This document shows, piece by piece, positions 7,480 to 61,927 of a stretch of 64,000 nucleotides of DNA. Both the position numbers and the translations under genes were made by a program. The notes below the pieces were generated by a model. That model had not been told where the DNA came from and made no database searches. It saw only the letters and a program-made list of their open reading frames with translations. Numbering within the stretch: position 1 is the stretch's first letter; the number at the start of each line of letters is the position of its first letter. Origin of the DNA: Macrostomum lignano (Eukaryota); assembly GCA_002269645.1 (NCBI GenBank), contig NIVC01001392.1:124001-188000 (forward strand), read 5' to 3'.

Positions 7480-8901
7480 TGGGATTGGCATTGGGATTGG
7501 GGGATTGGGATTGGGGTATTGGGATTGGGATTGGGATTGGGGCATTGGGATTGGGGCATTGGGATTGGGATTGGGATTGGGATTAGGATTGGGATTGGGA
7601 TTGGGATTGGGATTGGGATTGGGGCATTGGGATTGGGGGATTGGGATTGGGGCATTGGGATTGGGGGATTGGGATTGGGATTGGGGGATTGGGATTGGGA
7701 TTGGGATTGGGATTAGGATTGGGATTGGGATTGGGATTGGGGCATTGGGATTGGGATTGGGATTGGGATTGGCATTGGGATTAGGATTGGGATTGGGGCA
7801 TTGGGATTGGGATTGGGATAAGGGCATTGGGATTGGGGCATTGGGATTGTGGGATTGGGATTGGAATTGGGATTGGGGCATTGGGATTGGGGCATTGGGA
7901 TTGGGATTGGGATTGGGATTGGGATTGGCATTGGGATTAGGATTGGGATTGGGGCATTGGGATTGGGATTGGGATTGGGGCATTGGGATTGGGGCATTGG
8001 GATTGGGGCATTGGGATTGGGGGATTGAGATTGGGATTGAGATTGGGATTGGGGGATTGGGATTGGAATTGGGATTGGGATTGGGATTGGGGCATTGGGA
8101 TTGGGATTGGCATTGGGATTGGGATTGGGATTGGGATTGGGATTGGGGCATTGGGATTGGGATTGGGGCATTGGGATTGGGATTGGCATTGGGATTGGGA
8201 TTGGGATTGGGGCATTGGGATTGGGGCATTGGGATTGGAATTGGGATTGGGGGATTGGGATTGGGATTGGGATTGGGATTGAGATTGGGATTGGGATTGG
8301 GATTGGGATTGGGATTGGGATTGGGATTGGGATTGGGATTGGGATTGGGGGATTGGGATTGAGAATTGAGGGATTGGGATTGGGACTGGGATTGGGACTG
8401 GGTTTGGGAATTGGGAATTGGGATTGGGGATTGGAATTGGGATTGGGATTGGGAATTGGGATTGGGATTTGGGGATCGGGATTGGGATTGGGATTGGGAA
8501 TTGGGATTGGGATTGGGGCATTGGGATTGGCATTGGGATTGGGATTGGGATTGGGATTGGGGGATTGGGATTGGGATTGGGATTGAGATTGGGATTGGGA
8601 TTGGGATTGGGATTGGGATTGGGATTGGGATTGAGAATCGAGGGATTGGGATTGGGACTGGGTTTGGGATTGGGAATTGGGATTGGGGATCGGAATTGGG
8701 ATTGGGATTGGGAATTGGGATTGGGATTTGGGGATCGGGATTGGGATTGGGATTGGGATTGGGAATTGGGATTGGGATTGGGATTGGGATCGGGATTGGG
8801 AATTGGGATTGGGATTGGGGATTGGAATTGGGATTGGGAATTGGGATCGGGATTGGGATTAGGATTGGAATTGGGATTGGGATTGACAATTGAATTGGGA
8901 T
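7480..8901. repeat. (GGGATT)n microsatellite with GGGGCATT/GGGAATT variants, ~1.4 kb, intronic
   Basis: Direct reading; the long ORFs across it are low-complexity artefacts. Confidence 0.95.
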
Positions 8902-9806: not shown

Positions 9807-10655
9807 CTCTCTAGTGCCTCTCCTAAATTCAGCTGAAATACAAATAAAGTACATACTCGTACACTGTTGCGTGAGGCTCGAGCTTACCTGCTGGCTCAAG
9901 CCGGAATCAACCCGAGCAATTCGATGCTTGGCGTTGGCTCTGCTGGGCGGCAATTTTAAGCATGAATATGGATAAAGAGGTGGGGAGACAGGGGGGGGGG
10001 GGGAGGTTGAGATCAAAGCAAATCACATCCCGAAGAGAGGAATGGGCAAGCGCTATGGAGCAGGTAGGTAGGAGGGACGGAATTCGCTAGAAAAGCTTCT
10101 CTTCGAAACAAGTGCCAACAGCCTGAGCTTTACCTGTGCTCACGGCAATAAGCGGGATGTTGCACAAGGCCGAGACTTAAAGCAGCCAGCTGCGGCCTGC
10201 GAGCACTGATTGCTGCTTCTTGTAAAGTTGGAAAGCGAAAGGAAAACACGTGGATGATGGAGGAGAGCAGCCAACAGCGCTCAGCTGACCAGCCTGTAGG
10301 AGGTTGATGAAGAGAAGAAGCTGGCTAGCTGGCTGGATTCCTGCATAGCCGTCACGCCCTGCCTTTTGCTCATCCAAAAAATGCTAATGAAGCAGGAAGT
10401 GCATCGGCCCGTAGTGACTGCACAGATTTGATATGCAGATGCGCTAATCCGGTTGCGACTGAGCTAACATATAATGATGCCATACAAGTACAAACCCCAG
10501 GGGCTGCTGGCCATAAAATATTTTGGGATGTTTGTGTGCGAGAATATGGGCGTTCCGAGTACTAGAGACACGTGAACAGCTACTCCATCCTAATGCCGAG
10601 ACTGGAGAGATCCAGTGCGATCGGCTTGGATTTTTCTGACTGTCGGATTTTTTTC

Positions 10656-11044
10656 CGACAGATTGGCCTGACAGATTGGCCTGACAGATTGGCTGCCTGA
10701 CAGATTGGCTGCCTGACAGATTGGCTGCCTGACAGATTGGCTTGACAGATTGGCTGCCTGACAGATTGGCTTGACAGATTGGCTGCCTGACAGATTGGCC
10801 TGACAGATTGGCTGCCTGACAGATTGGCCTGACAGATTGGCTGCCTGACAGATTGGCCTAACAGATTGGTCTGACAGATTGGCCTGACAGATTGGCCTGA
10901 CAGATTGGCCTGACAGATTGGCCTGACAGATTGGCTGCCTGACAGATTGGCTGCCTGACAGATTGGCCTGACAGATTGGCCTGACAGATTGGCTGCCTGA
11001 CAGATTGGTCTGACAGATTGGCTGCCTGACAGATTGGCCTGACA
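10656..11044. repeat. 13/17-bp minisatellite (CTGACAGATTGGC[TGC]C)
   Basis: Direct reading. Confidence 0.95.
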
Positions 11045-11493
11045 TGCAGATTTATAGGCGTAAAGTTGAGTGAGTTCTGTCAGCATTGAGTGGGAAAGGT
11101 ACGTTAAAGATCAGACCAATTATCGTTGGAACCTGGCTGCCAGCTTAAGTCGCACTGCGGGAGAACTGCTCTGATGCACAGAAGCCAGCCGCTTCCATAA
11201 AGTCATTAGCGACAAACAAGATAAGGTAAGCAAACAGTATAAAGAGCTGCTCTCCGGCCTTCATCGCTGATCGCAAATATTGTGACAGGTCAGAAAAAAT
11301 ATTCGATTCGCGTAATCGGCAGGTGATAGATAATGGGCATTCCAGAATGTATTTTGATACAACGAAGTGACAAAAATAAACGGACATACTAGCCACGGTC
11401 AGACAAATCTAAGGTAATAAAAAACTAAGATCGCTTTTCGAAAAATTTCCTACAACAAATTCTGCTCTTAAACAGCTTTGTCCACCTACCTAT

Positions 11494-11680
11494 CCTAGAC
11501 CCTCCGTGTCCTCCCATCCCTGACCTAGACCCTCTGTGTCCACTCTCTGACCTAGACCCTCTGTGTCCACTCTCTGACCTAGACCCTCTGTGTCTACCCT
11601 CTCTGACCCTAGACCCTCTGTGTCTACCCTCTCTGACCTAGACCCTCTGTGTCTATCCTCTCTGACCCTAGACCCTCTGT

Positions 11681-11762
<82 letters not shown>
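11494..11762. repeat. 27-28-bp repeat (CCTAGACCCTCTGTGTCYACYCTCTCTGA), ~7 copies, running into (TC)n
   Basis: Direct reading. Confidence 0.9.
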
Positions 11763-11765
<3 letters not shown>

Positions 11766-11887
11766 TTCTCTCCCTCATCTCCATACAGAATAGTTATACA
11801 AGCGTACTTGTCTCACTTAAATTGTACCTATGAAAACAGTTAATCGTTCAGTAGAATCTTGAGATCAAAAGTTTTCTTAGAGATGAG

Positions 11888-12679
11888 TTAAGGTTGTCCA
11901 GCCAGAAGATGGTGATTATAGCTGACAGCTCGAGATCTTTTCGACACGCAAGTCTGCAACTGGCTAAAAAAGTTCGGCGTGTGCTCCAGCAGGCTCCAGG
12001 ACAGCGTTGGAAACAGCTTCATTCCCGACGGCAAGTGTCTGACCGTGGCCGCGTCAACTGTGATGCAAAATGTGGGATAATTGCGATACTTCTGCTGTAT
12101 AAGCAGACGCCAATAGTCCGAACACTCTGCCAGGTACTGCTGAGACACCAGCAGGACGCTAATGAAGCATCTATCAACCACGTCAGACACGGGGAAGTCA
12201 GTTGAGGACACCATCTGGCTGTCTAGCAGGATCCACCGAGGCTCCAACTGTTTGAGCTTCTTAATCAAGCATTTCGCTTTGCCAGCGTCGCTCTGATGAT
12301 AGCCAACGTAAACGTGGTAATACTCGACAAACAGGCGCGAGTCCAGTCTCTGCATGATGTCAGTTCTCTGTAGAAGTCGCAGGCATTCGAATAAATTTCT
12401 CAGCGTTGCCTGCTGCGGACTCGATTGCAGCCACTTGCGCAGCACCCAGTTCAAGTTGCTATTGCTTTCAGTGAGCTCGGCTTTCTCTTCCATATAGCGC
12501 ACGTTGAGCAGCTCGAATAGGCCTAACAGATCGCTTGTGTACTCGCGACCGTCCCAGGTTGGAGTGGCCACAGACTGAGCGTTCAGGTGATCGGCTACCA
12601 GGGCCAGGTTTGCTCGGCTCAGACACCAGACTGGCAGCTTGGCGTGGCGCTCCATCACTTGCTGCAGTTTCAGCTCCAT
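11888..12679 (-). CDS. death domain + TIR domain adaptor, MyD88-like (263 aa, single coding exon)
   Basis: N-terminal half ends WLQSSPQQATLRNLFECLRLLQRTDIM (death-domain W...ATV..L...L..L.R.D pattern). C-terminal half has a TIR box-1-like YHVYVGYHQSD and RCFISVLLVSQQYL (betaC). In-frame TAA directly before the ATG and an acceptor-like TATTAG just upstream of that (6 nt before the ATG). Confidence 0.75.
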   Translation of the reverse strand: MELKLQQVMERHAKLPVWCLSRANLALVADHLNAQSVATPTWDGREYTSDLLGLFELLNVRYMEEKAELTESNSNLNWVLRKWLQSSPQQATLRNLFECLRLLQRTDIMQRLDSRLFVEYYHVYVGYHQSDAGKAKCLIKKLKQLEPRWILLDSQMVSSTDFPVSDVVDRCFISVLLVSQQYLAECSDYWRLLIQQKYRNYPTFCITVDAATVRHLPSGMKLFPTLSWSLLEHTPNFFSQLQTCVSKRSRAVSYNHHLLAGQP

Positions 12680-13985
12680 TTACGCCTAATAGTTGGTAAA
12701 TAGTTAGTTGAACCTGTGCAAGGCTTGGCTGCCTTAGCCGTGTGTGCGAGAGTGTGGAAACTCTGCCTATTTCTATGCCCACACAGCTGTGCGTACAGTG
12801 AATGCCACAATCTCTCCTAGCCATCTCTGTCTCTTTCTCTAGCCTCCAGTCTGCCTCTCGCGCAGGCAGGCGTTCTATCTTTTGAAGGCATGAAGACAGT
12901 GACCGGCAATTTATTAATCTGCGAGGCCAGTCCTTTAAATTTCTTTTATAAAAGCATAGAAATGAGAAAGAAGAAAGAAGTTTGAGTACATTGTACAAAA
13001 ATAACGTCTCAATCTGGATGCAGCAATACATGTACAGGGGCAGGACAGCTACACCGAAACCTCTAGCAAAATTTTCGCGATTCGGGATTGTGTAGCATCC
13101 TGTCTCAAGTTGTCCATGTTGCGATAGAAGTTCCTCTTCGGCTTAGCACAGGGGTGCCTCCTAGCCATCTCGATAACTGTTTGGGATCTGCTACCGACCA
13201 CACCCAGTTTTTTAGTAATCTATGCCTTTTGCGGTTCATTCGATACGATGCAGTATACTTTGAATTGTATATTGCTACGTAGCTAGCTATTTAGACGTAG
13301 CTAAAATGTATTGCGCAATATTTGCAAAGTTTACTAAAAGTAGAGAGTCAAGATTATTAGTCCAAACTATTCGCAATAGTATTAACAATAAAATGATTAT
13401 TTCTGTATTTGGATGTTTGATTTTATATTACTCGATATTGAACCTGGTAAGCTATACCTGAAAAAAATGGAGTTTCGCTGTGTACTTTATTTAATTTTCA
13501 GACTGGTTTACTCTCGAAGTTTACTCTCGTTACTCTTGTATTGGTTGCAGCAACCACCAGATAAAACTTGTTTTCTTACTCAACAAGATTCTGTGAGACG
13601 TTCTTTCACCTGTTTGCTGTAAGTTAAAGCGCCAATTTTATTAGTGGATAAATTTATTAGTGGCGTAATATTAGTGGAAGGTGTTGCCATGGCCTGCTGT
13701 ATAATGAGCCTAAAACGAGAGCAGCAACAGTCTGTTTAAACAAAAAACATTAGCTACACTTTACGTCGCCTCGTCTAAGAAGTGTCAATGGCACTCAATG
13801 ATGGTAACTATAGTCCTGTTTTAAAGACCTGTGCAGCGGACCATCGTTTCACTCAGTCATTCTGTCCGATTCCCTTCCCTGTCAACTTACGTTAGCCAAA
13901 AAAGGGGGGGTGAATAGCCGTGCATTGTTGCACGATGGAGGAGAAGGCTTAATTTATTGCCAATGCTTCTCAAAACGTTTCTTTA

Positions 13986-13989
<4 letters not shown>

Positions 13990-14032
<43 letters not shown>

Positions 14033-14045
14033 TCTCCCTCTCTCT
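13990..14045. repeat. (CT)n microsatellite between the divergent genes
   Basis: Direct reading. Confidence 0.9.
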
Positions 14046-14457
14046 CGTTCCTCCGGGCTCGCCCTCTTGCTCTGTCGCTCTGTAACGTGCATTATTGTGT
14101 GCTCCGCTGCACCCGCTCGGGGCGCAGGTGAGCCAGTGAGTGCTTGGAACTCTGAAAAGAAAGACTGCATTGGTCCTGCAGCTTGGCTTGGATCGGGGGA
14201 GGGGGGGTGGCTGCGAAGTGTACAACTGGGTGCATTCACTCTATACGCAAGACCTTTCTGGTGTTGCCAGGCTACTTCGAGACAAGCCGGCGCGAGAGTG
14301 TAGAAAAAAGAGAGAAAAATAACGAATAGAAAAAGCGGTCCAAGCGCTGTTAGATTTAGTTATTGGTATACAAAAATTACAAGTTTACCTGGCTGGCAAC
14401 AACAGTCAAAGCAGTCGAGCTCCGCATTCCTACACTTAGTGAAGAATCTTATCAGCC

Positions 14458-17400
14458 ATGAGCAAGCGACGGCCCGGCGGCCGGGCTAGGAAGGAGGTCC
14501 GCATCCAGGAGGAGGAGGAGGACACCAGTCGGCTGTACCGGACGCCACTATCGGCGGAGGCGGCTAAGTACTGTAGCCGGCCAGTGGCCGAGTCGCCGTG
14601 GGGCCTGGACGGCCTGGCTGAGATTCAAATCAGCGGAGACAGGCACTATCGACCCGAGCGGCTGCCCTCCGGGCGCAAGGAGCGACCAAAGAGCGCCCGT
14701 CTGCACACGATGTATTATCAAAACTTGGACTACGTGCACGGCATCGCCGACACGCTGCGCACCCTGGAGCTGAGCAACACGGGGCTGTTCGCCTTCCCGC
14801 AGGAACTAGTCGAACGCCTGTTGAATATCGAGACGCTTATTTTAGACGACAACAATTTGACGACCGAAGGCTTCCCAACATGCTTCAAGGACCTGGTGTC
14901 GCTCACTAGTCTGAGCGTGCGCAACAATGGCCTGACTGGAATTCCATCCAGCTGGTCCTATCTGTTCCAGCTGACAAGCCTGTTGGCCGACAACAATCAG
15001 ATATCCAGTCTGAAGCACCTCGAACGACTCACTAAACTGCAGGTGCTCAGCTTGCAAGGCAACTGCATTGAAGAGATTCCGCGCGAGTTTTACGCACTGA
15101 AGAAACTGGAATGCCTGAACCTGAGTCACAATAGCATCGCTTCCGTCACTGTGGATGTAAAAAGGCTTATCAACCTCAGGGAGCTCGACTTGTCCCACAA
15201 TTGTCTAGCATTCCTCATCCCGGATCTCTTTCTGCTGCCAAAGTTGGATGGCCTCCAAGTTAGCAACAACGAGGTGGTAAAGATTCCTACGGTTGCACTG
15301 AAGACGAAGAATAAGCGAACGATCGATTCAGTTGATCTATCATTCAACAAGCTTACCAGGTTCCCAGAAAACGTCTTCTTGATTGCGGAAAAGCTTGACT
15401 TGACGTCAAACTCTATCAGAGTGATCAATAATTCCGCATTCAAAAAACTGGACTGGCGCACAACCAAGCAGCTTTGTATGCACGACAACCCGCTGAACAA
15501 TCCGCCAAGGGACGTTGCAGAGGGCGGCCTGAAAGCAATGCTGCACTATTATTTCGAGACAAAGGTTGACAGCAAGATCTATCAAGGCATCAAGGTGTTT
15601 CTGCTCGGATCTGGCGGCTGCGGCAAGTCCAGTCTTGTCCAGACCTTTCTTGACCAGCAGTCGCGGCTGTGCACCGAGGATGAGGAGACAATTTGCCTCG
15701 ACATCTACGACTATCAAATCGACACGTCGGACGACTTGGCAGATCCGCGGCCTCTAAGCCTGTCTATCTGGGACTGCTCAGGAAATCCAGACTACATGCC
15801 GTACATCTTTCCATTCTTACACTTTCCCTCGCTGGCTCTCATTCTGTTCGATCTGACTGAGTACACCACCGAGAACTTCTCAGAGCTGATTGGCCAGTGG
15901 ATCGATACGCTAATTTTGCGCAACAATCGTGCCGTGTTCATTCTGATTGGAACCAAGGCGGACCTGTGCAAGGAGCCCGAGAAGGTGCTGGAGCTGGCCC
16001 AGAAAGACACCGAAGAGTACATTAAGAATTATCTCGATAGCATCGACCATGAGATTGGCTGCATAGAGCGACTCGATCAGATCTCAGCTGCTTTTAATGA
16101 GCAGTACAAACAGTATCTCAGCCTGAAGAACTTCAAACCACTGTTTCACCCGGAAGCTCTCATCACTAGCAGTGCTCAAATGCTAGGTTTCAATCGGCTT
16201 GAGTCCGTACTAGTAGAGCTTGCTACCCAGACAAAAACATTCCCATCCGTGATGCGGGTCATCCCAGCTCTCTGGGGTGACGCCGAAAATTTCTTTGACG
16301 ATTTAGGCCAGAATCAGAACATCATCAGCTTCAACGAGCTGGCGAACATCGTTCACAAACAGTTCGGCCTGAGACACCTCACGGGCCAGATTTGTCAGTA
16401 CTTGCACGATAGCGGTCGAGCAATCTTCAACGAACGGGAGCCTTCGTTTAAGGAGACCGTTGTCCTGCGACCAAGCGTGCTGTTCGAACACACCTGTACG
16501 CTGTTCCGACACAACCTCTACGACTTTCTAATGGATCCTAGTGATAAAGAGGAGGTTAGGGAAAGATTCGTTAGGGATTATTCAGCAGCCGAATTCACAA
16601 AGGCGGTAGAGCTCTGCACAGTACACGGTATTCTGCTACACAACCTTCTCAAGATGTTTTTTGGCACTGGAAAGCGACGCTTTACCTTAATAAACTACCT
16701 GTGCGACTGCCTTCAGTGGTGCTACCGCATTGGTGGGCCAGTGGAGAACCCTGACAGCGAGCTGCCGCATCAGCGCGAGCTTAACTTTGACCTTGAACGA
16801 GACGAAGACGGCAAAGTGAAGACGGACACATCCAAGGTTAGCCTTCTCGTGCCGAACCTGGTCCGGTCTCCCGAGCCTACGGTGGCGCAGACGCATTGGC
16901 AGAATGCGGCATTGCGCGTTAGTGCCGGTTTTCGCTTCAGCCGTTTCACTCCGTCGATGTTCTTCGAGCGACTGCTAGTCTGCCTGCACACGGAGCGGCT
17001 GAGGTACCAATACCACTGGCAGAACGGCGTCCTGGCATTCGACGCCGAGGACGACAACGTGTGGATTCGAGTGACAAAGGAAGACCCTGAGGACAAATCT
17101 TATCTAGTTGTGCTCTCCTGCGGCGTCGTCACTGAGGAGAGATTCAACTTCGTCCGAGAAGAGCAAACTCCTACAGAGGAGCCCGTTGAGGATAGCGAAG
17201 AGGTCCTTGCGTTAAAGACTCAGCTGGCTCGAGTCTGGAGGTGCCTCTTACCGTCACTACTAGAAGCAGAAAAAGTGCTTAAACAGTATCCAGGTAAGTC
17301 ACAGTTGTGCAAGGATGGCTTAGCTAAGTTGGACAGAAAACTTAAAACTTCGTTTCTAAGAAAATCTTCAAAAAGATCGGCTTTTTGTAGGAAACTGCAA

Positions 17401-18086
17401 AATACACTATTGTGTTATGAAATTTTCATTTTTACTAAAGAATTTTAGACAAAACTCCTTAAATTACTCAGCATGCTTTTAATTTGGTTCCTTTATTACG
17501 CGCTGCTAATTTACATAATTGTCACTTATTTACAAACTAAGTTATATATGTCAATCAAATGAATCACTTAGTTTCACGAGTACAAAGAAAGCTTTGCAGT
17601 AATTTTGTATCTATGAAGTAACAAAAAAGGTCAGTTAGATTACTTATGACGCCCTTGCCTGCGCGTCCTGAGCAGGTCGCGTGTACTAAATTAGAAAGAC
17701 TGCCCATAAAATTGCTAAAATATTCTAACTATCGCGTCCTCACTGCAGCGGCATGGTTTCGGCGTGAGGTGAAGTGTCCCGAATGCGGCGAGATGACTTT
17801 CTGGGGCGAGTGGCTTTCGCCGAAGGAAGCACAGGACTCGGAGGCCAAGCCCTGTCGAGCCTGTCACGCGGACATTCTGTCATGTCTGTTGGTCCAGCCG
17901 AGGGTCAGCAAGAGAAGCACCAGGCCAACAATACGGAGCGACGTCGCTGTTAAACTGCAGGATTCTCCGGCGCCCGGCGCTGCGGCCGCCAATCCGGCTG
18001 ACGGCGAGGTGAACGAAGCGCTGAACTTCGATGCCAGTCAGAAGCGAGTCGCAACGGAGGGTCGAAAGAGCGTCAGTTTTATGTGA
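14458..18086 (+). CDS. MFHAS1: LRR-ROC-COR (ROCO) protein, MFHAS1/MASL1-like; exons 14458-17293 and 17749-18086 (~1057 aa)
   Basis: Tandem LxxLxLxxN LRRs; ROC G1 GSGGCGKS, G3 WDCSG, G4 GTKAD; COR starting IPALW; no kinase domain. Phase-1 intron CAG|GTAAGT...CTGCAG|CG; C-terminal CPEC and CRAC cysteines. Confidence 0.85.
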
Positions 18087-19234
18087 CTCTCGATTCTGAG
18101 CAGTTCGTGTGCATGTCTGCATCTTGTTTTGAGCTCACTCTCAGCCACAGCAAGTGTGGTATTTTATTTTTCTCTAAATCTAAATTGCCTACATTGACTC
18201 AATAATATTGAAGCTACATACGAGCTATAGCAGGCAATCTGTCAACTAGATCGGTGCGGACTCTTTGTTAGATGTTCGCTACAGATTAAATAGCTACAGA
18301 TAAATTATGACAAAAATCTATAGCTGTGTATTTAAAATTTGTACACTCTTAATGTGCGTCAGATAGAATAGAGTATTTTCGCTTTAGAATGGCAAATGAT
18401 GTATATGTATAGTGTATTCCAATTCTTCTATTTTGCTGTCATTTTTCTATAGATTGACTTGTAAGAATATAATTGATATGAATGGAAGTTTTGTGACGTC
18501 ATGCCACGTGTTTCCAATGTGTATAGACAGGGGGCAACGTGTCACCGTTCCAGCAGGTTCGCGAGATGTGAACTGGACAATGTGGATATTGTCTGGTGTT
18601 GCCCTCACGTCGACGTCATTGGGAGAATAGCTAGTGTGACATAGTCGTTATGATTTTTTAGTTAGACGTACATTACAGATATGTGCAGATATAGCGGTAG
18701 CGATGGCGATCCGGGGACGATAGATTTATGCAGGATACTAGTATAAATAGGATGTACTGTGTACATCTACGGATCGTACGTATTTACGGGTGATCATCCG
18801 TTTGCATGTGAGTGCTGCACTGCATTCTACGATAGATTTATCCACCAGCCATGCTACAGAAAGTAGGATGTACGAATCACTTCGCGGTACATGCACTGTA
18901 CATACTAGACCCGCGGATGATAAGCAGAAGTATGATCGGTGAATACGCGGTCCTGTCAATTTTCTTTTCTACTCTGTATACATGTATATTGAAATTGAAT
19001 AGTAAAATTAATTTAAATCTTGCAGGGTGGAACAGCTATTGTTAATGATACGTACGATGAAGAAACATACGAATTATATTACATTATACGAGCGTAAATA
19101 CAGAAGTCCTTTTAGGCATTAATTTTTTCGAAACAATACTCACTCGCGGATCCGATCTTGTCTAGCATGTTGATCGTAAAGATCCGCTTGAGAACATATG
19201 AGATTTTCTGGTTTTACAACTGCAAAAATAACAA

Positions 19235-20420
19235 GGCACACCGCCGGGGAACAGAGTACAGTTCACAAAGGGCGGCGTGTGCCTGGCCGATCATCCCAGA
19301 GTCATCCAGCAGGCAATCCACGTAGCAGCGCTTCCGGCCGTAGCCTCGGCGCCAGGGGCCCTGCATCGTGAGCAGCAGGACTTCCTGCGCCGGTTGAGGG
19401 CAGGAGTAGGCAGCTCCGCACGGATGGTGTGGCCCGCCAGTTGAAGTCTTCTCCTGGGGAGGGTTTCGCTAGGTGGTCGCAGCCCTGCGCGCTGGTAGAG
19501 GGCTGCGTTGGAGATTGCGTCCGGGTAGCTGATGCTGAAGGCCGGCTCGCAGCAGGGCCGAATGTGCTGCGTCCAGCAACGTCTCCAGAGTCTCGGTCAG
19601 CGTCCACATCTCGACGTTGTAGGTCTCGGCCCTCAAAAGATGTAGCAAGCTGGAAAACTCGGATAGAGCGGGAGGCCACCGAGTCCAGGCCCCTGCGTCG
19701 CGCCAAGTCCTCCTGGACACTGGGCACGAGACCGCCGAGGTACGCGAAGCTCGTGCAGCGAGTTAGAGTTCCTCCGTTTTCTCGATGTCATTGCTTTTCG
19801 CTTTTCATCTCGCTGGCCCGACCGATGCCGCAGCTGCCATTAGGCTGTCTAGCATGCGCTGGGCTCCATCAGCCGTAGAGGCGAGCAGCATAACCCATGA
19901 GCGACAGCCGTGTCTCAGGTTGGCGGCTGCATGCTTGTTCGTCGTCAGAGCAGCAGGAAGCCGTCCTCATCTGTTGGCAGGGCTCTTTGCAGCCCCAAAT
20001 CGAAGCACCAACAGGAAAAGGTAGGGTGCAAGCGTGTCATCTTGCAGCACCCCATAGGTCGTGTTGAACAAGTCACACAGTCCGTCAGGTGTCACCACGG
20101 CGGCCGATCGAGTCTCCTGATAGAGAGCTATTGGTCGCTTTGGCACGTGGTGCGACCGCAAGACCGGTACGAGGAATCGCGAACCACAGAGTCGAATAAG
20201 GCCTTCCTGCTGAAATCTACGAAAATGAAGACAAAGGAGATGGCTTGGTGGGTGCGCGCTTTTTCTATATAATCCGCCTAAAGTCCAGGATTTGCGTCGC
20301 TGTGCCCCAGTGTGGTCGGATGCCGTTCTGCTCCAGCCGGAGAAACGGTTCCAGCACCGGCGGCAGAGCCGCATCAGCAAGATCTTGTTGAAGAAAGATC
20401 AAGCTTCGCGGCGCACGACA
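19235..20420 (-). mobile_element. RTE-like LINE relic (RT fragment), same superfamily as 3100-4227, decayed mainly by indels
   Basis: Fragments EPFLRLEQNGIRP, GVLQDDTLAPYLFLLVL, GYA..LLASTADGAQRML, FAYLGGLVPSVQEDLARRRG and YNVEMWTLT in shifting frames; CpG-rich. Confidence 0.9.
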
Positions 20421-21007
20421 GCACGCGGAAAGCACTTGAAACTCGTCTAATCTAACTCGACGTATTACAAATGACGCATTTAGACCATGTAGCAAAGTAC
20501 AAGTATGACATCCAGGTCTGCCTCAGTGAGACTGTACATATGTCTTGGACAACAGAGTATATACGAGACGGACTTTATAATCTATTTTTTTAGAAATGAG
20601 CTAGAGGCTGGGCTGGGTAGATCGATCGAAATTATATTTGTGGTATCGCTAGTACATTTAGTATTGCTTGCGCTGAATGGGGTCTCCACCATAGGAAAAT
20701 TTGGAAGCGAAAATCTGCAGTCGAAAAATCTTTTTTCTTGAGAGCATGCAGTGGTTGTAGCCGTGGCTTGGTGGTGGAGGTAGTTGACTGGTTCCAAAAA
20801 TCCAATTTATATTTAATCCAGTGGAAAAACATAAACTAAGTAAATTCACTATAGTTGAAAGAGGTCTTCAAATAAACAGAGAGGAAACTATTCGGAACGT
20901 TCGCCAGCGACGCGTTAAAGATAATAATGACGATTACAAATTTCTTAGAATGCGACGCGACCCTAAGCGATGGTTCATCGATTGGTGTTCATTTCAATTT
21001 AATGTTG

Positions 21008-22513
21008 TGTAACGAAATGAATTGCCGATACTAACACTTGAACTTTCAGCCGTCGAGAGTGCCAAGTCAGAGCGCGAACTCTTATTAACAATCGATGATT
21101 TATATTTATATTGGTTACTTATCAGTCATTAAAACAAAAGTTTCATTATAAAATTATCTTGCAAAATAACATAAATTACATACAGTAAAAAGTACAGTGA
21201 GATAAATACAATATAAATACTATAATACCAATACAACCTGATAAGAGTAAATACGAAATTATTTACTTTTAAATTACATACGCAGATATGTTACATTATC
21301 CTCCTCTTAGAAAAGACAATGTCCACATTGTCAAAAGTACAATTAACAAAAGAGTAGAATACAAAGTATAGAAAATAACTATTAAATATACAGTACATGC
21401 TAAATTTTGAGCAAAAAAAGATTGAACTCGCATTCCCAACTAGACATCGCAATGAGGTGACAGAACACATTTTAAAACAATGGTCTGGACCAAAAGAGAA
21501 GCTAGTTAACCAACACAAAAACCAGAACCCAACAGGGTTAGCAGAGCCCTGGGTTCTCCCCACCACAACCAGTGCAGAGCACAGCATGAATGAAGCAAAA
21601 AACACTTTTTTAATAAAAGGAATTGCCTGTGCACACTATTGTGATACACTGCCATTGGGTGAAACCTTACAAAACACAGAAGAAAATACAGTACAACATT
21701 GAAAAATTATTTGAAAAGTAAAGTACATCATGGCAATTGCCAAAATACAGTATAAAGTACATATGAAGGAATTACAGTAAGTATATAAATTAACAATTAA
21801 GTACAATTACATTAAAATCAATCAACAAAGCATAGGAATTGGAAAATGCAGCTTCCTGGTTCTGGACTTTAGAACAGCATAATTACAAATTTAAAAACAA
21901 AATTTTGCTCTGAACTGGGTACACATCTACATGTACATTCTACAGCTAGTATTGTATTTGAACATAGAGATGCTTTTAAAAAAACAAATATAATATTCGA
22001 AATCATTCAGCGACTGACAGTATCTGCAGCACCTGTCCTTTGGCAGCATCTTCGGCACCTGTGATTTTGTTGGCCTGGCTCGCGGCTGGCTGACATACTG
22101 GTTGGCGTCGGCTAGCTGGACGCGCGCTGCATGCTGATGTGATTGGCTGCGTTGCTGTACATTTGCGGTCGATCAGAAGATTCAGCGGAGTCCTTCATGG
22201 AATCCGAGTTCTGGTGTGGTCGCCATTGTAAAATAATGAATTGCCGATACTAACACTTGAACTTTCAGCCGTCGAGAGTGCCAAGTCAGAGCGCGAACTC
22301 TTATTAACAATCGATGATTTATATTTATATTGGTTACTTATCAGTCATTAAAACAAAAGTTTCATTATAAAATTATCTTGCAAAATAACATAAATTACAT
22401 ACAGTAAAAATACAGTGAGATAAATACAATATAAATACTATAATACCAATACAACCTGATAAGAGTAAATACGAAATTATTTACTTTTAAATTACATACG
22501 CAGATATGTTACA
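21008..22513 (-). mobile_element. intact non-autonomous LTR retrotransposon (TRIM-like), 1506 bp
   Basis: Near-identical LTRs 21008-21295 and 22227-22513 with TGTAA...TTACA ends; 4-bp TSD GTTG (21004-7 and 22514-7); PBS TGGCGACC 1 nt after the 5' LTR on -; PPT AAGAGGAGGATAA abutting the 3' LTR; no gag/pol ORF. Confidence 0.92.
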
Positions 22514-22653
22514 GTTGATTGAAATTGTGGACCTAAGCCTCCCTACGAGTAAATCATAACGTCTTAAACTTTATCATGTCATTATTCATTCCTAATATCT
22601 AGGGCCTAAGGTTTGAAATCATAATTATCTATCACAGTAGGCCTAGGCCCCTA

Positions 22654-23426
22654 ACACCTTTTTGCGTTCTATTTCGATAAAACTGCATTCAATTTCGGCA
22701 AACTGGCTTTCATTTTCGACATCAGCTACGGCCGCACATCCAAACTGCATTCGAATTCGACAAACTGAGAAACAATTTCGGCAACTCGAGTTTATTTAGA
22801 TAAACTGATATTTATAAACTAAAACGAAGGAATGCCAGACTGTCTATGGAAATAAGCGCATCTAAACCCAAAACAGATTTTCAATTGTGCATGAATACTA
22901 TTGTACATACTGTGCAATTGTTTCTGGCTATGCACTTTGTTCCTTCGTGCGCTATTGCTTGCTGATGAGTGCACAGGTTTTTGCATGTTCAATTACACCT
23001 TAACTAATAACTATATTCCAAGTGCAGTACTTGTTCAGAATTTAAGAAATCCCTCTCTTCTGTTTTTATCCCCTTTTTAGATTGGCGCTATCAAAATTGA
23101 GTGCAGTTTGCCAAAATTGAAAATCAGTTTTGGGTTTAGATGCACTTATTTCTATAGATAGGGCATAGTCTGTGTCTGAGGTGCTGGCTATCAAAATTGA
23201 ATATACTATGCTGAAATTCAATGCAGTTCTCCAAATTTGAATATCAGTTTGTCAAAATAGAAACTCAAGTTGCTGAAATTGAATGCAGTTTGCCGAAATT
23301 GTTTCTTGGTTTGTCAAATTCAAATGCAGTTTGGATATGCAGCCATATTTGATGCCAAAAATGAAAGCCAATTGGCAATTGCTGAAATTGAATGCAATTT
23401 TATTGAAATAGAATGCAAAAAGGTGT
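22654..23426. mobile_element. MITE/foldback element with long (~170-200 bp) terminal inverted repeats and an inner inverted pair
   Basis: Left ACACCTTTTTGCGTTCTATTTCGATAAAACTGCATTC versus right-arm reverse complement ACACCTTTTTGCATTCTATTTCAATAAAATTGCATTC; inner pair ~22840-22887 / 23117-23163; TSD not clean. Confidence 0.85.
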
Positions 23427-24019
23427 AGTAGTAATAAATTTTACAACCCTGCTAGGTCTACTGTAAATATTGTCTTAGGCCTATATTAGGCCTAGTAGGC
23501 CTGTACTAAGCCTTATTAAGCAATGGTGAAGCAATGTCTAGTAAGAATATAAATTGGCCCTAACCCTAGTTTTATAAGGACTAGGCCTATGGTCCAGTCT
23601 TGTTATTGTAATTTAAACCTAATTTTAGGTCTACTGATGCTCAACAAAAGAGTCTAGAGTTAAGCCTAGACTCTAGAGAACATTGTTTTAGATTTCATAT
23701 ATTTAGGCTGGCTGCTGGCTTTATAAAATCATAGGACATAGCTATTAGTATTAGGCCTATATTTTAAATTTTTATTTTAGCTAAATATCATATTACATTT
23801 ACATAGATGATAGTCCTAATGATGTAATGGTCTAAAGTTAATGAATGCGATTGAATTTAAATTTTAATTAAAATTAAAAAAAGAATAGGCATAAGATTTA
23901 AAATTTTAATATTAAATAGGCCCTAACAATTGGCCTATTTTTTGCCATTGGCATTGGATATAATATCAACATAAATTTAATAAAATAATCAACTTATTTT
24001 ATTAACTTAACATTATAGA

Positions 24020-24212
24020 CAGTGGTGCAACCAAAGGGGGGCAGGGGGTGGTTGCCCTCCCTTAGGCAGTTGCCCTCCCTTAGGCTAGAAAAAATCTGAA
24101 ATGGGGCCAAGCAAATTTTCACCAAAATAGAGCCATCTCTTTGCCCCCTCCTCCTGGGTCTTTACCCTCTAGAATTCACCCTCCTCTCAAAACATTTCTA
24201 GTTACACTACTG
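24020..24212. mobile_element. 193-bp hAT-like MITE
   Basis: TIRs CAGTGGTGCAACCA versus (rc) CAGTAGTGTAACTA; 8-bp TSD ATTATAGA / ACTATAGA. Confidence 0.75.
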
Positions 24213-25604
24213 ACTATAGAATCTGTAGTCTATTATATTATTACACTTAAGCCTATACAAGGCCAAATTCTAAAAAATTAAAATAACCTTTATTTTAACT
24301 TTTATCATCCATTTGACATAGGCCTATATAGTATTATAGATTTAAAAAAGTCAATAGGCTTTTTATATAAAGTAGATCCTAGATATAACTTATAAGTCAT
24401 TTTAATAGGCAATTGGTGTATATTTTGATGTCTATTTTAGTATAAATAAAAGACTTTTATATTAAATAGTTTACTAAACACAATTTAGACCCTAAATTTT
24501 GGGTAAGTTGGCGACACACTGCCAGCTAGCCTCAAACTGTTCAATCCACCTGTAAACCATTCATCAATTGATAGCATCGGGAGTTGGGTCCATGAAAGTT
24601 GATTAGGTGTTTGTGAATTTCAGGGCATTTCTGACCAAGGCTTTAAAGTCTAAAAATTGTGTGTCTCTGCCCTTCTGTAGAGTGAATGTTAGGGTCCATG
24701 ACTGGAATAAATCTTGCTGCTGTTTTGCAACTCTGTGCTTGATCAGCTCTACTTGTGGCTTTCTTCTGAGTGAGCATAGAAGCACTATGCTGTGTGTATT
24801 TCTATGGCCAAGGGTCTGCAAACAAATGCATGCTGTTTACAGCAGGAAGCACTTATAAAATTCCGACTTTTGTGGCATGAAAGCTAAAATAAGCCACTAA
24901 CTTTTAAGGCATATGATTTTTTTATCACACATTAATACTTGTTGAAGCAAGCAAAAGTGACACAACTTCTGGAATGCCCCTCATAGTAATCTTCCTAAAA
25001 GAAGCTTAAAAGTAATTGGTAAAAATTTTCTTTTGGTAAACTACAGTTGATACAATTAGTAAAACAAAAACTTTTTATATAAAATATTTACTATTACTAT
25101 ATATAATTAGTGTTAAGCACCAATCTATTAATAAGTGTTAACAAACATTAAGATTCTTTATTAACAATAATTGACTGACTAGGCCTGTTAAGATTGTTTT
25201 TTACTAATAGATTAATTAAATTTCATTTATAATTTTGTGAGTAAACACAAATTTATTAATGTTAATGACTGTGCCAATGAGACCAAAGTTGCAAAGAAAG
25301 AACAAAAAAGCTGGAAAAGAGGTTAAAACATCATAAATTTATTTTAATTTACCCAAATGCCAAATTAATCTCTTTTTATGATGATGATCATACCAATGTA
25401 ACAAGTTTTTACTTATGAATTTTAATGAATTAAAATTATGAACTTTATTGTTTGCTAATGAGTATTGCTTTAATTTGCTTCTTTTCTTTCCTAATCTTTA
25501 AAAACTTTCTCTGTACCTGCTAGTGTTTTGAAACAATTTTATTGTTTATATTTTAATAATGAATTAGCTTTCAAGTTTCAAATAAAAAATCTATTTCTTT
25601 TACT

Positions 25605-26330
25605 TTATGCTTGACTTACTTGACTTAGTTGCAGGGAGGGTGGTCCAAAGATACAGCAGGGGGCAAGTGCCACCTATGCCTTGGGCTGGCAAGCATTGTC
25701 TAGGGATAGGTTGGGTCCAAGCCAAGGAAGTGGAGCTAGTCTCAGTTGAAAGCTGGACAGTAGCAGACAAAGTGCTTATTATCTTCATTCTCGAGGTTAT
25801 AGAAGGTGTAGAGTTCACTCCAGCAGATGCCTTGGAGGAAATGTGGCTAAGGGCTAATGAGCAAGTGTGAACTACCTGTCTTAGTGAGGGAGTCAGCAAG
25901 CTCATTACTTTTGAAACTAGCATGTCCTAAGATCCAAGTGAGCTAGATAGTGTTCCTCCAAGCCAGCTTATTGAGCTGCCCAATACCAGTCATGGACTAT
26001 TTGTGAGTTTGTTGTGGTGTGACACAGGGCCTGCAAGGCATCCTGGCTGTCAGAGTGGAAGAAGATTCTTCTGGCTTTGAAGTCCTTGCAGTAGAGCTCA
26101 GCAGCATAGGAGCTGATGGCAAGGACTTTGTTTTAGAAGACATCAGAAAGTCTACTAGTGTATTGGGTGTGAGTATGTGGCCATTAATAAGGATGCAGAT
26201 TCCAAAGCCAAATGTATTGTCTTTGAAGGATCCATCAGTGAAGCAGTGGACCTCCTGGGGGGCAGCTGTATATATAGATAATTTACAATAGTCTATACTC
26301 GTATCTTTGAGATAGTTATAGCTATAAACT
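25605..26330 (-). mobile_element. 3' end of an RNase H-bearing non-LTR retrotransposon (I/R1/LOA-like), pseudogenised
   Basis: Reads VHCFTDGSFKD..FGFGICI, VF*NKVLAI, FHSDSQDALQAL, I*LTWILGHASFKSNELADSLTKTG (RNase H), then LYTFYNLENEDNKHFVCYCPAF (degraded CCHC knuckle). Confidence 0.85.
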
Positions 26331-26439
26331 AGCAATCTTTGCCCCCCGATGGGGGACATCTGTATAGAATCCTTGTTCTTTACAAATAACAAATAGACAA
26401 CGAAATAAAGCCTTCATAAAAAAAACAACAGACATTCCC

Positions 26440-26870
26440 CCTAAAAACAAAACATCCCAAGACAGCAAGCATCCCCAGAAAGCATTCAAGCATCGATCCC
26501 CAAATAGCAAGCATCCCCCAGACTGCAAGCATCCCCCAGATAGCAGGCATCCCCCGATAGCAAGCAACCCCAGATAGCAAGCAACCCCAGATAACAAGCA
26601 ACCCCAGATAGCAAGCATCCCCCAGATAGCAAGCATCCCCCAGATAGCAAGCATCCCTCAGATAACAAGCAACCCCAGATAGCAAGCATCCCCCAGATAG
26701 CAAGCATCCCCCAGATAGCAAGCATCCCCCAGACCGCAAGCAACCCCAGATAGCAAGCATAACCTGGATACAAAGAGACCTTATAGATATCTAGCAACCC
26801 CCTCTCAGATAGCAAGTACCCTCCACCCCCAAGAGCAAGCATCTCCCAATAGCAGGTTACCCCAGTAGCA
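26440..26870. repeat. ~18-bp minisatellite (CAGATAGCAAGCATCCCC)
   Basis: Direct reading. Confidence 0.9.
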
Positions 26871-27441
26871 AACTGTCATGGAATATTATTATACTTGCTA
26901 GATTGTCCTTTGTACTTGAAAATTCGGATTAACACAAATGACACTTTTAAAAGGCAATTAAGAAAATCACATAGCCCTAAAACTTTGTCTATGCACATTT
27001 TTCACTAGCCTAAGATGCTAGTTGAGTTTAGTTGGCTCCTAAATGGATTATTACTGCGCTAGTTTGATTTGGTATTCATACTTTTTATCTAAGATATTTT
27101 TTATATTGTTCAAACAAATGCTAAAGTAGTTAAAGTTTAAATGATTACCATTTCATTGAAGTGTGACTCTTCTTTATGCAACCTAGCTTTCTCCTAAAGT
27201 TCTTCAAGTTGAATCTTAATTTTTTAATTTGTACCAGACAACACATAGATGCTTTCATGAGAACCCAACTGCTCTTTACTTCCTACCTACCAGAGAATCC
27301 CACAATGTCTCTACTGAAAATTCCCTAAAACTAAAACTACTAAAAGTAGTGTAGAAGCAAATCTGCGCGAAGCATGCATATCAGTGCCGGTTAGCAACAA
27401 TACTTGCCCAAATCTAGCCAAAGCCAATTGCAATATTTCAG

Positions 27442-29640
27442 GCCAGTAAGGCCAAGTGCAGCGGGCCAGCTGCCTCCGTGCAGCCCCCGTCTCCATCTCA
27501 GCAGAGCCTGCAGATGCCTCTTGGCCCAGCAGACCTCATCTCCCCCTGTCACTACACTGGCGGCCTGTCAGCTCGCGAGCTTGGCGCCATAGACGATTTA
27601 GCCAATTGCATGGTTGTCGACTCCCTGTTGGGCATTGTCAGCCACAAAATGGCCGAAAGATTTCGTCAGCCATCGGCCTCGCATATTCGGCGATGGCGGG
27701 CTGCTGTTGAAGACTTCGTGGTTGATCAGGTAAAGCTCATGCTGATTGCTCAACTCAGTGTACAAAAGGTAACTATACTACCCTACATCAGTGTACAAAG
27801 GGCAGCTGTACTACCCTACCCTATAGATCAGAGTACCAGGCACTCGCCACTCTCCCTACAAACCCGCAGGACTACGCAGTCGCCTATGCCCGTCTAGTCG
27901 CCCGACCGCCGGATTCCAGCGAATCCGGGCGGCCATTCCTAACCGAGGCGCGTCGCAACGATCCCAGCTTGCGGCTGCACCTGTACCGCTACCTGCACCT
28001 GTTCGACAGGCGCTCCGGCGTGCGAATCGAACTGTGCCGCCGGTACGCGCACGAGAACCGGACTGGAGCCAGGATTGTGTCGACTAGAGACTGGGAGGCC
28101 AACGAGAAAATTGACATGCTTATTGGTAGGTTGCTGTTTGTATTGGCTGTGTAGCATCTGTGTTAATTGTCAGTAGTTAGGTGGCTGTTAGCAGTCAGGG
28201 GGTTGTCATTCAGCTGTCAGGGGGCTGTCAGTCAGCAGTCAGGGGGTTGTCAATCAGCTGTCAGGGGGCTGTCAGTCGGCAGTCAGGGGGCTGTCATTCA
28301 GCAATCAGGGGGCTGTCAGTCAGCAGTCAGGAGGCTGTCAGTCAGCAGTCAGGGGGCTGTCAAGTCAGAAGTCAGGAGGCTGTCAAGTCAGAAGTCAGGA
28401 GGCTGTCATTCAGCAATCAGGGGGCTGTCAGTCGGCAGTCAGGGGGCTGTCATTCAGCAATCAGGGGGCTGTCAGTCAGCAGTCAGGAGGCTGTCAGTCA
28501 GCAGTCAGGGGGCTGTCAAGTCAGAAGTCAGGGGGTTGTCAGTCAGCAGTCAGGGGGTTGTCATTCAGCTGTCAGGGGGCTGTCAGTCAGCAGTCAGGAG
28601 GCTGTCATTCAGCAGTCAGCTGTCAGTCAGCAGTCAGGAGGCTGTCAGTCAGCAGTCAGGAGGCTGTCAGGTTCCGTTAGTCAGCAGTCAGGGCTATCAG
28701 GATTCAACTCGCAGTCATTAGTCAAAAGCCGCGCCCCCCCCCGTGCAGGCTGCATCGCGGAGATGACGCCAGACGAGGAGCGCAGCTATCTCAGACCGGG
28801 CCACAACGATTTCTCAGTGATGTACTCAACCAGGAAGCACTGCTCGCAGCTGTGGCTGGGCCCGGCCGCCTATATTAATCACGACTGTCGGCCCAATGTG
28901 AGATTCGTCCCAACCGGTCCACACTCCGCTTACTATCAGGTGAGCTGGAAACTGAATTATTTGTTGAAAATCAAAATTTGCATGTTACTACTCGTGTCGT
29001 GTAAGTAGTGCAAGCTGGCTACTTATTTATTCATTTTCCCCAGGTGATCCGGCCGATACGCAAGGGCGACGAAATTTTATTATTCTACGGCGCCCACTTT
29101 TTCGGCAAGTCCAACTGCGAGTGCGAATGCGAGACCTGCGAGCGACGGCTTGCTGGCGCCTTCGCCCAGCAGCAGCCGGGCGGCTCTGGCGACGACAGCA
29201 ATGGCTATCGGTTCCGGGACACCGACAAACGGCTGCGACGCCTGGCCGCTGCCGCGTCTAAACGGCAACGCGAAGAAGATGAGGCGGCGGAGCCTGTGGC
29301 AGCGGCGCCGTCAACAGACAAGGCGGAGACAAGCCGGCAGGCTCAGCAACAGCAGCAGCAGCCGCCTTTGAAGCTGCCACGTCTGCTAATTCGAATCAGG
29401 CAGCTGGGCGATCCGCTGCGATACGAGCTGGTAAGTCTGGCCTCTGCAACTTCTGCTCTGGCCTCCGAGTCCGCCTCCGAGGAGTCCGAGTCCTCCCCGG
29501 CCTCTGCGCCCGCCTCTGCCGCGTCCACCGCAACCGCTGCTGGCCCCGCCTCTGCCGCGGACGCCAGCGACGGCCGCAGCTCGTCCACTCCGGCCTCGTC
29601 AATTGACTGCAGCTCCCCGGCCAATCGCAGCCCGGCCTGA
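27442..29640 (+). CDS. SUV420H1: histone H4K20 methyltransferase Suv4-20/KMT5B-C; exons 27442-27729, 27870-28125, 28749-28939, 29044-29640
   Basis: [26 protein letters not shown]; [15 protein letters not shown]; [31 protein letters not shown]; [18 protein letters not shown] (post-SET). All introns GT-AG and phase-consistent (0,1,0). Start is ATG 27514 or an unseen upstream exon. Confidence 0.95.
28167..28700. repeat. ~22-bp minisatellite (GTCAGTCAGCAGTCAGGGGGCT) in Suv4-20 intron
   Basis: Direct reading. Confidence 0.9.
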
Positions 29641-38310: not shown

Positions 38311-41300
38311 GGGACTGTACCATGGACTTGTAGAGAGACTGTACCAAGGACTTCTAGACTAGAGAGGGACTGTACCAAGGACTTCTAGACTAGAGAGGGA
38401 CTGTACCAAGGACTTCTAGACTAGAGAGGGACTGTACCATGGACTTGTAGAGAGACTGTACCATGGACTTGTAGAGAGACTGTACCAAGGACTTCTAGAC
38501 TAGAGAGGGACTGTACCAAGGACTTCTAGACTAGAGAGGGACTGTACCAAGGACTTCTAGAGGGACTGTACCATGGACTTCTAGAGGGACTGTACCATGG
38601 ACTTCTAGACTAGAGAGGGACTGTACCAAGGACTTCTAGACTAGAGAGGGACTGTACCAAGGACTTCTAGAGGGACTGTACCAAGGACTTTTAGAGGGAC
38701 TGTACCAAGGACTTCTAGAGGGACTGTACCAAGGACTTCTAGACTAGAGAGGGACTGTACCAAGGACTTCTAGAGAGACTGTACCATGGACTTCTAGACT
38801 AGAGAGGGACTGTACCATGGACTTTTAGAGGGACTGTACCAAGGACTTCTAGACTAGAGAGGGACTGTACTAAGGACTTCTAGACTAGAGAGGGACTGTA
38901 CCATGGACTTCTAGAGGGACTGTACAAAGGACTTCTAGACTAGAGAGGGACTGTACCATGGACTTTTAGAGGGACTGTACCAAGGACTTCTAGAGGGACT
39001 GTACCAAGGACTTCTAGAGGGACTGTGCCAAGGACTTTTAGAGGGACTGTACCATGGACTTCTAGAGGGACTGTACCATGGACTTCTAGAGGGACTGTAC
39101 CAAGGACTTCTAGAGGGACTGTACCATGGACTTCTAGAGGGACTGTACCAAGGACTTTCAGAGGGACTGTACCATGGACTTCTAGAGGGACTGTACCATG
39201 GACTTCTAGAGGGACTGTGCCAAGGACTTCTAGAGGGACTGTACCATGGACTTCTAGAGGGACTGTACCAAGGACTTCTAGAGGGACTGTACCAAGGACT
39301 TTTAGAGGGACTGTACCATGGACTTCTAGAGGGACTGTGCCAAGGACTTCTAGAGAGACTGTACCATGGACTTCTAGACTAGGGAGGGACTGTACCAAGG
39401 ACTTCTAGACTAGAGAGGGACTGTACCAAGGACTTCTAGAGGGACTGTACCAAGGACTTCTAGAGGGACTGTACCAAGGACTTCTAGACTAGAGAGGGAC
39501 TGTACCATGGACTTCTAGACTAGGGAGGGACTGTACCAAGGACTTCTAGACTAGAGAGGGACTGTACCAAGGACTTCTAGAGGGACTGTACCAAGGACTT
39601 CTAGAGGGACTGTACCAAGGACTTCTAGAGGGACTGTACCAAGGACTTCTAGACTAGAGAGGGACTGTGCCAAGGACTTCTAGAGAGACTGTACCATGGA
39701 CTTCTAGACTAGGGAGGGACTGTACCAAGGACTTCTAGACTAGAGAGGGACTGTACCAAGGACTTTTAGAGGGACTGTACCAAGGACTTCTAGAGGGACT
39801 GTACCAAGGACTTCTAGACTAGAGAGGGACTGTACCAAGGACTTCTAGAGAGACTGTACCAAGGACTTCTAGAGAGACTGTACCATGGACTTCTAGACTA
39901 GAGAGGGACTGTACTAAGGACTTTTAGACTAGAGAGGGACTGTACCATGGACTTTTAGAGGGACTGTACCAAGGACTTCTAGAGGGACTGTACCAATGAC
40001 TTCTAGAGGGACTGTGCCAAGGACTTTTAGAGGGACTGTACCATGGACTTCTAGAGGGACTGTACCATGGACTTCTAGAGGGACTGTACCAAGGACTTTT
40101 AGAGGGACTGTACCATGGACTTCTAGAGGGACTGTACCATGGACTTCTAGAGGGACTGTGCCAAGGACTTCTAGAGGGACTGTACCATGGACTTCTAGAG
40201 GGACTGTACCAAGGACTTCTAGAGGGACTGTACCAAGGACTTTTAGAGGGACTGTACCAAGGACTACTAGAGGGACTGTACCATGGACTTCTAGAGGGAC
40301 TGTGCCAAGGACTTCTAGAGAGACTGTACCATGGACTTCTAGACTAGGGAGGGACTGTACCAAGGACTTCTAGACTAGAGAGGGACTGTACCAAGGACTT
40401 TTAGAGGGACTGTACCAAGGACTACTAGAGGGACTGTACCATGGACTTCTAGAGGGACTGTGCCAAGGACTTCTAGAGAGACTGTACCATGGACTTCTAG
40501 ACTAGGGAGGGACTGTACCAAAGACTTCTAGACTAGAGAGGGACTGTACCAAGGACTTCTAGACTAGAGAGGGACTGTACCAAGGACTTCTAGAGGGACT
40601 GTACCATGGACTTCTAGAGGGACTGTACCATGGACTTCTAGACTAGAGAGGGACTGTACCAAGGACTTCTAGACTAGAGAGAGACTGTACTAAGGACTTC
40701 TAGAGGGACTGTACTAAGGACTTCTAGACTAGAGAGGGACTGTACCATGGACTTCTAGAGGGACTGTACCAAGGACTTCTAGACTAGAGAGGGACTGTAC
40801 CATGGACTTTTAGAGGGACTGTACCAAGGACTTCTAGAGGGACTGTACCAAGGACTTCTAGAGGGACTGTGCCAAGGACTTTTAGAGGGACTGTACCATG
40901 GACTTCTAGAGGGACTGTACCATGGACTTCTAGAGGGACTGTACCAAGGACTTTTAGAGGGACTGTACCATGGACTTCTAGAGGGACTGTACCATGGACT
41001 TCTAGAGGGACTGTGCCAAGGACTTTTAGAGGGACTGTACCATGGACTTCTAGAGGGACTGTACCAAGGACTTCTAGAGGGACTGTACCAAGGACTTTTA
41101 GAGGGACTGTACCATGGAATTCTAGAGGGACTGTACCATGGACTTCTAGAGGGACTGTGCCAAGGACTTCTAGAGAGACTGTACCATGGACTTCTAGAGG
41201 GACTGTACCATGGACTTCTAGACTAGAGAGGGACTGTACCAAGGACTTCTAGACTAGAGAGGGACTGTACCAAGGACTTCTAGAGGGACTGTACCAAGGA

Positions 41301-60848: not shown

Positions 60849-60955
60849 GTTGTTAATATTGAATGGGTTCACACTTAGAGACATGGTGGGTGGCCCTGTC
60901 ATTAATATTGAATGGGTTCACACTTAGAGACATGGTAGGTGGCCCTGTCTCTAAT
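60849..60955. repeat. ~46-bp tandem duplication
   Basis: TAATATTGAATGGGTTCACACTTAGAGACATGGT repeated. Confidence 0.8.
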
Positions 60956-60985
60956 ATTGGAGATTATAGGCATGGCTACCATCGC

Positions 60986-61859: not shown

Positions 61860-61927
61860 ACCACTTGGGATTCAAACCTAGCTACTTGCAATCACAAGGC
61901 AATCAACATACTCACTAAGCCACCACT
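61860..61927 (-). mobile_element. eroded tRNA-derived SINE head
   Basis: Reverse complement GTGGTGGCTTAGTGAGTA...GGTTTGAATCCCAAG, i.e. A-box and B-box with C>T/G>A changes. Confidence 0.5.

Follow-up and report, generated by a model that had tools for sequence, protein, structure and literature searches.

The locus and its three copies

The window, i.e. the whole stretch of 64 kb that was analysed (NIVC01001392.1:124,001-188,000, Macrostomum lignano), contains a locus (10000-28086, identical to L002) that is found in three copies on separate contigs, namely the window itself, L001 and L003. L001 and L003 may be paralogues or uncollapsed haplotypes, a choice without effect on the conclusions drawn here for arms and CpGs. 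The positions of the main features are collected in the table. The LRR-Roc-COR (ROCO) gene has an open reading frame at 14458-17448 (996 aa) with 100% identity to a Macrostomum lignano UniProt entry, and the 90% cluster of this protein consists of three GenBank proteins, Mlig022820 g1, g2 and g3. It is adjoined by a death-domain ORF on the opposite strand (11888-12679, minus), and both occur in three near-identical genomic copies. Further downstream lies a SET-domain gene whose protein, when rebuilt from its spliced parts, has 441 aa. CpG observed/expected ratios (o/e) of the three coding sequences in view range from 0.82 to 1.07.

Features of the locus (positions in the window)
Feature	Position	Strand	Remarks
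CpG-replete domain	14000..22950		CpG o/e 0.99 over 14000-21007
LRR-Roc-COR (ROCO) gene	14458..18086	+	CpG o/e 0.94
LTR-type (TRIM-like) insertion	21008..22513	+	1.5 kb; 288-bp direct repeats, TG..CA ends, GTTG target duplication
Candidate target-site duplication, left copy (TAA)	22652..22654		called from the sequence
Left arm, CpG-rich	22655..22889	+	11-12 CpGs, o/e 1.47
Subterminal direct repeats, about 21 bp, AAACTGCATTCAATTTCGGCA	22681..22762 (copies 22681-22700, 22743-22762)	+	
Unpaired central region	22890..23045		holds the transition zone
CpG-depleted domain	22951..27360		16 CpGs in 4.4 kb, o/e about 0.1
Right arm, CpG-poor	23046..23425	-	CpGs only at 23086 and 23294; TpG+CpA o/e 1.69
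Mirror copies of the subterminal repeat, reading TTTCAGCA	23209-23228, 23271-23290, 23380-23399	-	
Candidate target-site duplication, right copy	23426..23428		window TAG, L001 TAA
Decayed RNase H domain of a retrotransposon	25600..26290	-	frameshifts and stops; stitched translation against PF00075, E = 8e-8
SET-domain (KMT5B/Suv4-20-like) gene	27448..29640	+	CDS CpG o/e 1.07

Between these two genes the locus changes abruptly in CpG content. The o/e stays at about 1 up to ~22,950, and only 16 CpGs follow in 22,951-27,350, in agreement with the preliminary description, which had placed a mutational boundary inside a small inverted-repeat element. The depleted block comprises the right arm of this element, an AT-rich stretch and the decayed RNase H domain, and its far edge lies about 90 bp upstream of the SET-domain gene. 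Taken over the whole window in 500-bp steps, CpG o/e is bimodal, with 12 steps below 0.2 and a main mode at 0.6-1.2. The same description had located the boundary at the edge of an AT-rich island. A border is indeed present there, but it is better described as the edge of a 4.4-kb CpG-depleted domain than as one of AT content alone, since the block includes stretches of 46-48% GC that are equally CpG-depleted, while the left flank is as AT-rich (28-35% GC) and yet retains its CpGs.

Transposon insertions mark the copies individually. The TRIM-like insertion is specific to the window, its site being empty in L001 and L003, and is therefore recent; it lies 140 bp from the inverted-repeat element. 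All 8 CpGs shared by its LTR pair (21008-21295 and 22227-22513) are retained, both repeats being located within the CpG-replete domain. L003 has a copy-specific insertion of its own (15870-21847 of L003), composed of a BEL/Pao-type LTR retrotransposon (1051-aa gag-pol ORF) and an ORF bearing RNase H, and its CpG o/e of 0.96 indicates that young transposons here are without CpG depletion. A protein search gave no M. lignano entries for the BEL/Pao pol and three UniRef-only proteins for the RNase H ORF.

Elsewhere in the window, minisatellites are unusually abundant, with ~25 distinct arrays (1-2476, 7480-8885, 38311-46481 and many others), one of which extends over 8 kb with a 24-bp unit, no CpG and almost no GpC. 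An Rfam search of the window gave no match. The window also holds a second AT-rich, CpG-poor island (60100-63150, GC 0.28, CpG o/e 0.19), inside which a segment of roughly 570 bp (60986-61555) displays short inverted ends and TGTAYRCCA sub-repeats. Its left cluster of sub-repeats has TG/CA forms only and its right cluster has five CG forms, so that here, as a second case, CpG decay may have been unequal between parts of the same small element.

An inverted-repeat element with unequal arms

The element spans 22655-23425 (771 bp; 906 bp in L001) and has termini CACC...GGTG. The inverted repeat noticed in the preliminary description is real: the terminal 48 nt are 92% complementary, and further pairing is found over 87 nt (85%) and, in an inner pair, over 50 nt (90%). 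As seen in the fuller copies, L001 and L003, arm pairing extends over about 290-330 bp; the left arm of the window has lost part of its inner section, each copy having its own deletion among the sub-repeats, and has an internal deletion or rearrangement of its own around 22785-22835. The subterminal repeat gives 5 matches against 0 expected by chance. When its 20-nt form was compared with metagenome and prokaryote contigs, 9 single chance hits and no wider similarity were obtained, and there is no second family copy in the 64-kb window, L001 or L003.

Concerning its class, the element is non-coding (longest ORF just 59 aa), small and bounded by terminal inverted repeats, which on structural grounds would make it a MITE-like non-autonomous DNA transposon; no transposase related to it turned up in the sequence analysed. 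Non-coding character, a length below 1 kb, terminal inverted repeats, subterminal repeats of ~21 bp and a flanking TA or TAA are shared with MITEs that combine long inverted repeats and internal direct repeats, such as the Tc1/mariner IR-DR and the PIF/Harbinger Tourist types, but the CACC...GGTG termini differ from the canonical ends of both superfamilies. The flanks, compared among three copies that are all occupied by the element, read TAA/TAG in the window and TAA/TAA in L001, and fit either a 3-bp TAA or a 2-bp TA. The former could correspond to the TWA duplication of PIF/Harbinger (Tourist-like) elements; the TA duplication of Tc1/mariner (Stowaway-like) elements would be possible only if the two termini differed by one base.

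The two arms differ sharply in CpG content, as had been proposed from a first reading of the sequence. The left arm contains 11 CpGs, at 22665, 22675, 22696, 22717, 22729, 22733, 22752, 22758, 22779, 22787 and 22825, against a single one in the outer right arm (23294), to which the inner right arm adds 23086. Counted over 12 aligned ancestral sites, CpG is kept at 11/12 on the left and at 1/12 on the right (Fisher p = 1.1e-4), and chance is thus ruled out as the source of the asymmetry (p = 1e-4). At nearly all positions where the arms differ, a C or G of the left arm corresponds to a T or A of the right arm, and TpG+CpA o/e is 1.10 in the left arm as compared with the raised value of the right arm. 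An alignment of the left arm with the reverse complement of the right one reproduces every change quoted in the preliminary description (GCGT>GCAT, TCGA>TCAA, TACGG>TATGG, CCGC>CTGC and TTCGAATTCGAC>TTTGAATTTGAC) and yields two further ones, TCGG>TCAG and CTCGAG>CTTGAG. The TpG>TpA changes reported for the right copy of the inner pair, CTGTC>CTATC and ATGG>ATAG, are both present as well.

Polarity, persistence and CpG specificity of the changes

The same element sits at the same site in all three copies, with left arms that are all CpG-rich and available right arms that are all CpG-poor, which excludes a recent conversion confined to one copy. The direction of change follows from the right arms of the window and L001, without recourse to other family copies, which the preliminary description had proposed for this purpose. 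Here TCGA has decayed to TCAA in one copy and to TTGA in the other, and TTCGAATTCGAC to TTTGAATTTGAC in one and to TTCAAATTCTAC in the other; L001 also retains TTTCGGCA where the window reads TTTCAGCA. Decay of the same CpGs in different directions means that the common ancestor had a CpG there, as the left arm has, and this excludes a family consensus with asymmetric arms, one of the ways in which the earlier reading could have been wrong.

Within the outer 122 bp, four CpGs were lost before the copies separated, all of them in the right arm and none in the left. Changes acquired since then number 9 and 7 in the right arms, against 2, 1 and 0 in the left arms (binomial p = 1.6e-4). A hand count of CpG states kept across copies gives about 38/44 for the left arms and about 3/38 for the right arms. 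Since the left arms carry deletions of their own in columns 128-276 of the six-arm alignment, these columns were excluded from the comparisons. Read in arm orientation, the right-arm changes comprise 11 C>T and 7 G>A and thus affect both strands, and a strand-specific process, either transcription-coupled or due to a one-strand deaminase, is rejected. In the centre of the element, the CpGs at 22946 and 22950 have each been lost in one other copy, a pattern that points to a gradient extending over some hundreds of bases. The border is placed in the element's centre, with a width of roughly 250-400 bp, and has been in place since before the locus was triplicated.

Mutation rates at CpG sites were compared between copies on both sides of this border. 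In the depleted domain 9/18 surviving CpGs differ between copies, a rate about 20 times that of other sites. For the window and L001, 4/13 CpGs differ by transition in 24,591-27,350, against 0.8% at other sites, and all of those in 22,951-24,590 differ (5/5). The corresponding figures for the left domain are 9/448 CpGs (2%) and about 0.6% at other sites; Fisher p for these contrasts lies between 2e-4 and 8e-10. Transitions of the left domain, once polarised with the three copies, amount to 1.2% at CpG, 0.85% at other G/C and 0.87% at A/T sites, hence there is no CpG hypermutability on that side. After allowing for local divergence, hypermutability is CpG-specific and restricted to the right side.

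Some of the variation is of another kind. The right arm also shows a non-CpG C>T excess (about 7-8 GC>AT against 1 AT>GC), and divergence between the window and L001 reaches 6-10% in 22.5-24.6 kb (22514-24590), against 0-2.5% on either side, a value that also holds for the remainder of the CpG-poor block. This divergence could reflect an older haplotype segment with deeper coalescence, or local hypermutation, as a second process that is not CpG-based; L003 ends too early for the changes at 23.2-24.6 kb to be polarised.

Recurrent presence/absence indels of 6-7 bp also separate the copies. They consist of CTAGGC or TAGGGCC beside CTA, create (C)TAGGCCTA palindromes, and are located in the window at 22603-22609, ~22930, ~23555, ~23709, 23754-23763 and ~24473. 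Where about 1 occurrence of TAGGCCTA would be expected in the 64 kb, there are 13, most of them inside the two AT-rich CpG-poor islands. A transposon that targets TA and has GG..CC ends may have left the indels behind as footprints of its excision.

A putative methylation border and its alternatives

The arm asymmetry is probably explained by a stable border of germline 5-methylcytosine (5mC) running through the centre of the element, a reading that draws on base composition and copy comparison. A non-autonomous cut-and-paste transposon would have landed across this border, its left arm falling in DNA unmethylated in the germline and its right arm in an AT-rich block of old repeats whose CpGs are methylated there. 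This block would start at the element's centre and stop about 90 bp upstream of the next gene. The right-arm CpGs would then have been turned into TpG or CpA on both strands by spontaneous 5mC deamination, and the left-arm CpGs would have mutated at the background rate only. CpG depletion, TpG/CpA excess, changes on both strands and faster CpG mutation inside the domain only are the marks of methylation-driven decay, and all four are found here. From these marks we infer 5mC as the cause of the decay. Against such a border stand the non-CpG C>T excess of the right arm, the 6-10% divergence of 22.5-24.6 kb, and gene bodies that lack CpG depletion, unlike the usual invertebrate pattern. According to recent reviews (PMC11292947, PMC9246332, PMC10658182), M. 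lignano has kept both DNMT1 and DNMT3, its 5mC level is low, and methylation patterns of free-living flatworms are unknown.

Two of the alternatives draw on some of these features. GC-biased gene conversion or recombination among the three copies could repair C>T losses on the left, leaving an unconverted right block to drift towards AT. It is in line with the low copy-to-copy divergence of the left domain, where GC>AT (0.85-1.2%) and AT>GC (0.87%) transitions are balanced, and with the high divergence of the 22.5-24.6 kb block. However, 24,591-27,350 has a low divergence (1-2.6%) and is equally CpG-depleted, with hypermutable CpGs; moreover, the bias is not CpG-specific, and four CpG losses in the right arm, as against none in the left, predate the copy split. 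We therefore regard such conversion as an improbable main cause, which could nevertheless have contributed to CpG retention on the left. About equally improbable is local hypermutation independent of methylation, through cytosine deamination where AT-rich DNA melts easily, or through error-prone repair of breaks linked to repeated small insertions or excisions in the island. The non-CpG C>T excess of the right arm would suit it, as would the high divergence and the recurrent CTAGGC indels of 23.2-24.6 kb, but it leaves unexplained both the TpG/CpA excess and the ~20-fold faster change of CpGs in the low-divergence part, and the left flank kept its CpGs at the same low GC content.

The remaining two, which the preliminary description had named as possible refutations, have far less in their favour. 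Had the left arm been replaced before triplication by conversion from another family copy, or been a separate younger insertion, the four pre-split differences would be accounted for; but the rate asymmetry continues in every copy after the split, and the arms form a single element, paired over about 290 bp and enclosed by one pair of TAA/TAR triplets, which makes this origin very improbable. An assembly chimera or another assembly or sequencing artefact has practically no chance of being the cause, because three independent contigs agree on the same asymmetry and the differences are base substitutions of one class and not homopolymer indels, the typical errors of long reads. The methylation border is retained as the preferred explanation.

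This mechanism is already known, and the locus is a clean new example of it, a natural experiment rather than a new kind of system. With CpG decay in the germline-methylated DNA of mosaic animal methylomes it shares a CpG o/e near 0.1, a reciprocal excess of TpG/CpA, changes that affect both strands, hypermutability specific to CpG, a sharp edge and, at the other edge, a gene start that looks unmethylated. In most invertebrates the CpG-depleted compartment is formed by gene bodies, whereas here it is AT-rich intergenic repeat DNA, with coding sequences staying close to expectation. As in the dating of LTR pairs, two copies that were alike at insertion record later mutations, but the arms of this element lie in different mutational domains, and so a position effect is measured and not age. 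Fungal RIP with AT-rich isochores shows likewise C>T decay of repeats, sharp-edged AT-rich blocks and some TpG>TpA; here only one repeat arm is affected and the host is an animal. RIP is recognised by a CpA>TpA bias, low (CpA+TpG)/(ApC+GpT), high TpA/ApT and hits on both repeat copies. It is rejected, since the decayed arm has the opposite values (2.86 and 0.42, respectively) and only one arm was hit.

Regarding the biology of the flatworm, the locus provides an indirect, internally controlled hint about its methylome: a stable, sharp border, with intergenic repeat DNA on the decaying side and genes on the intact side. Arms that were alike at the start and had different outcomes argue for marking determined by position, and disfavour marking determined by sequence, e.g. 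guided by small RNAs, because both arms would then have been hit. Rather speculatively, M. lignano might aim its sparse methylation at AT-rich blocks of old repeats, with borders as narrow as 1-2 nucleosomes and unmethylated gene bodies, so that the blocks become CpG-free islands. If this were true, block targeting together with the broader C>T drift would resemble a genome defence that is determined by position and independent of the sequence silenced, given that identical arms fared differently. The arm-versus-arm and copy-versus-copy tests can be scaled genome-wide, and would measure by how much methylation raises the mutation rate in M. lignano.
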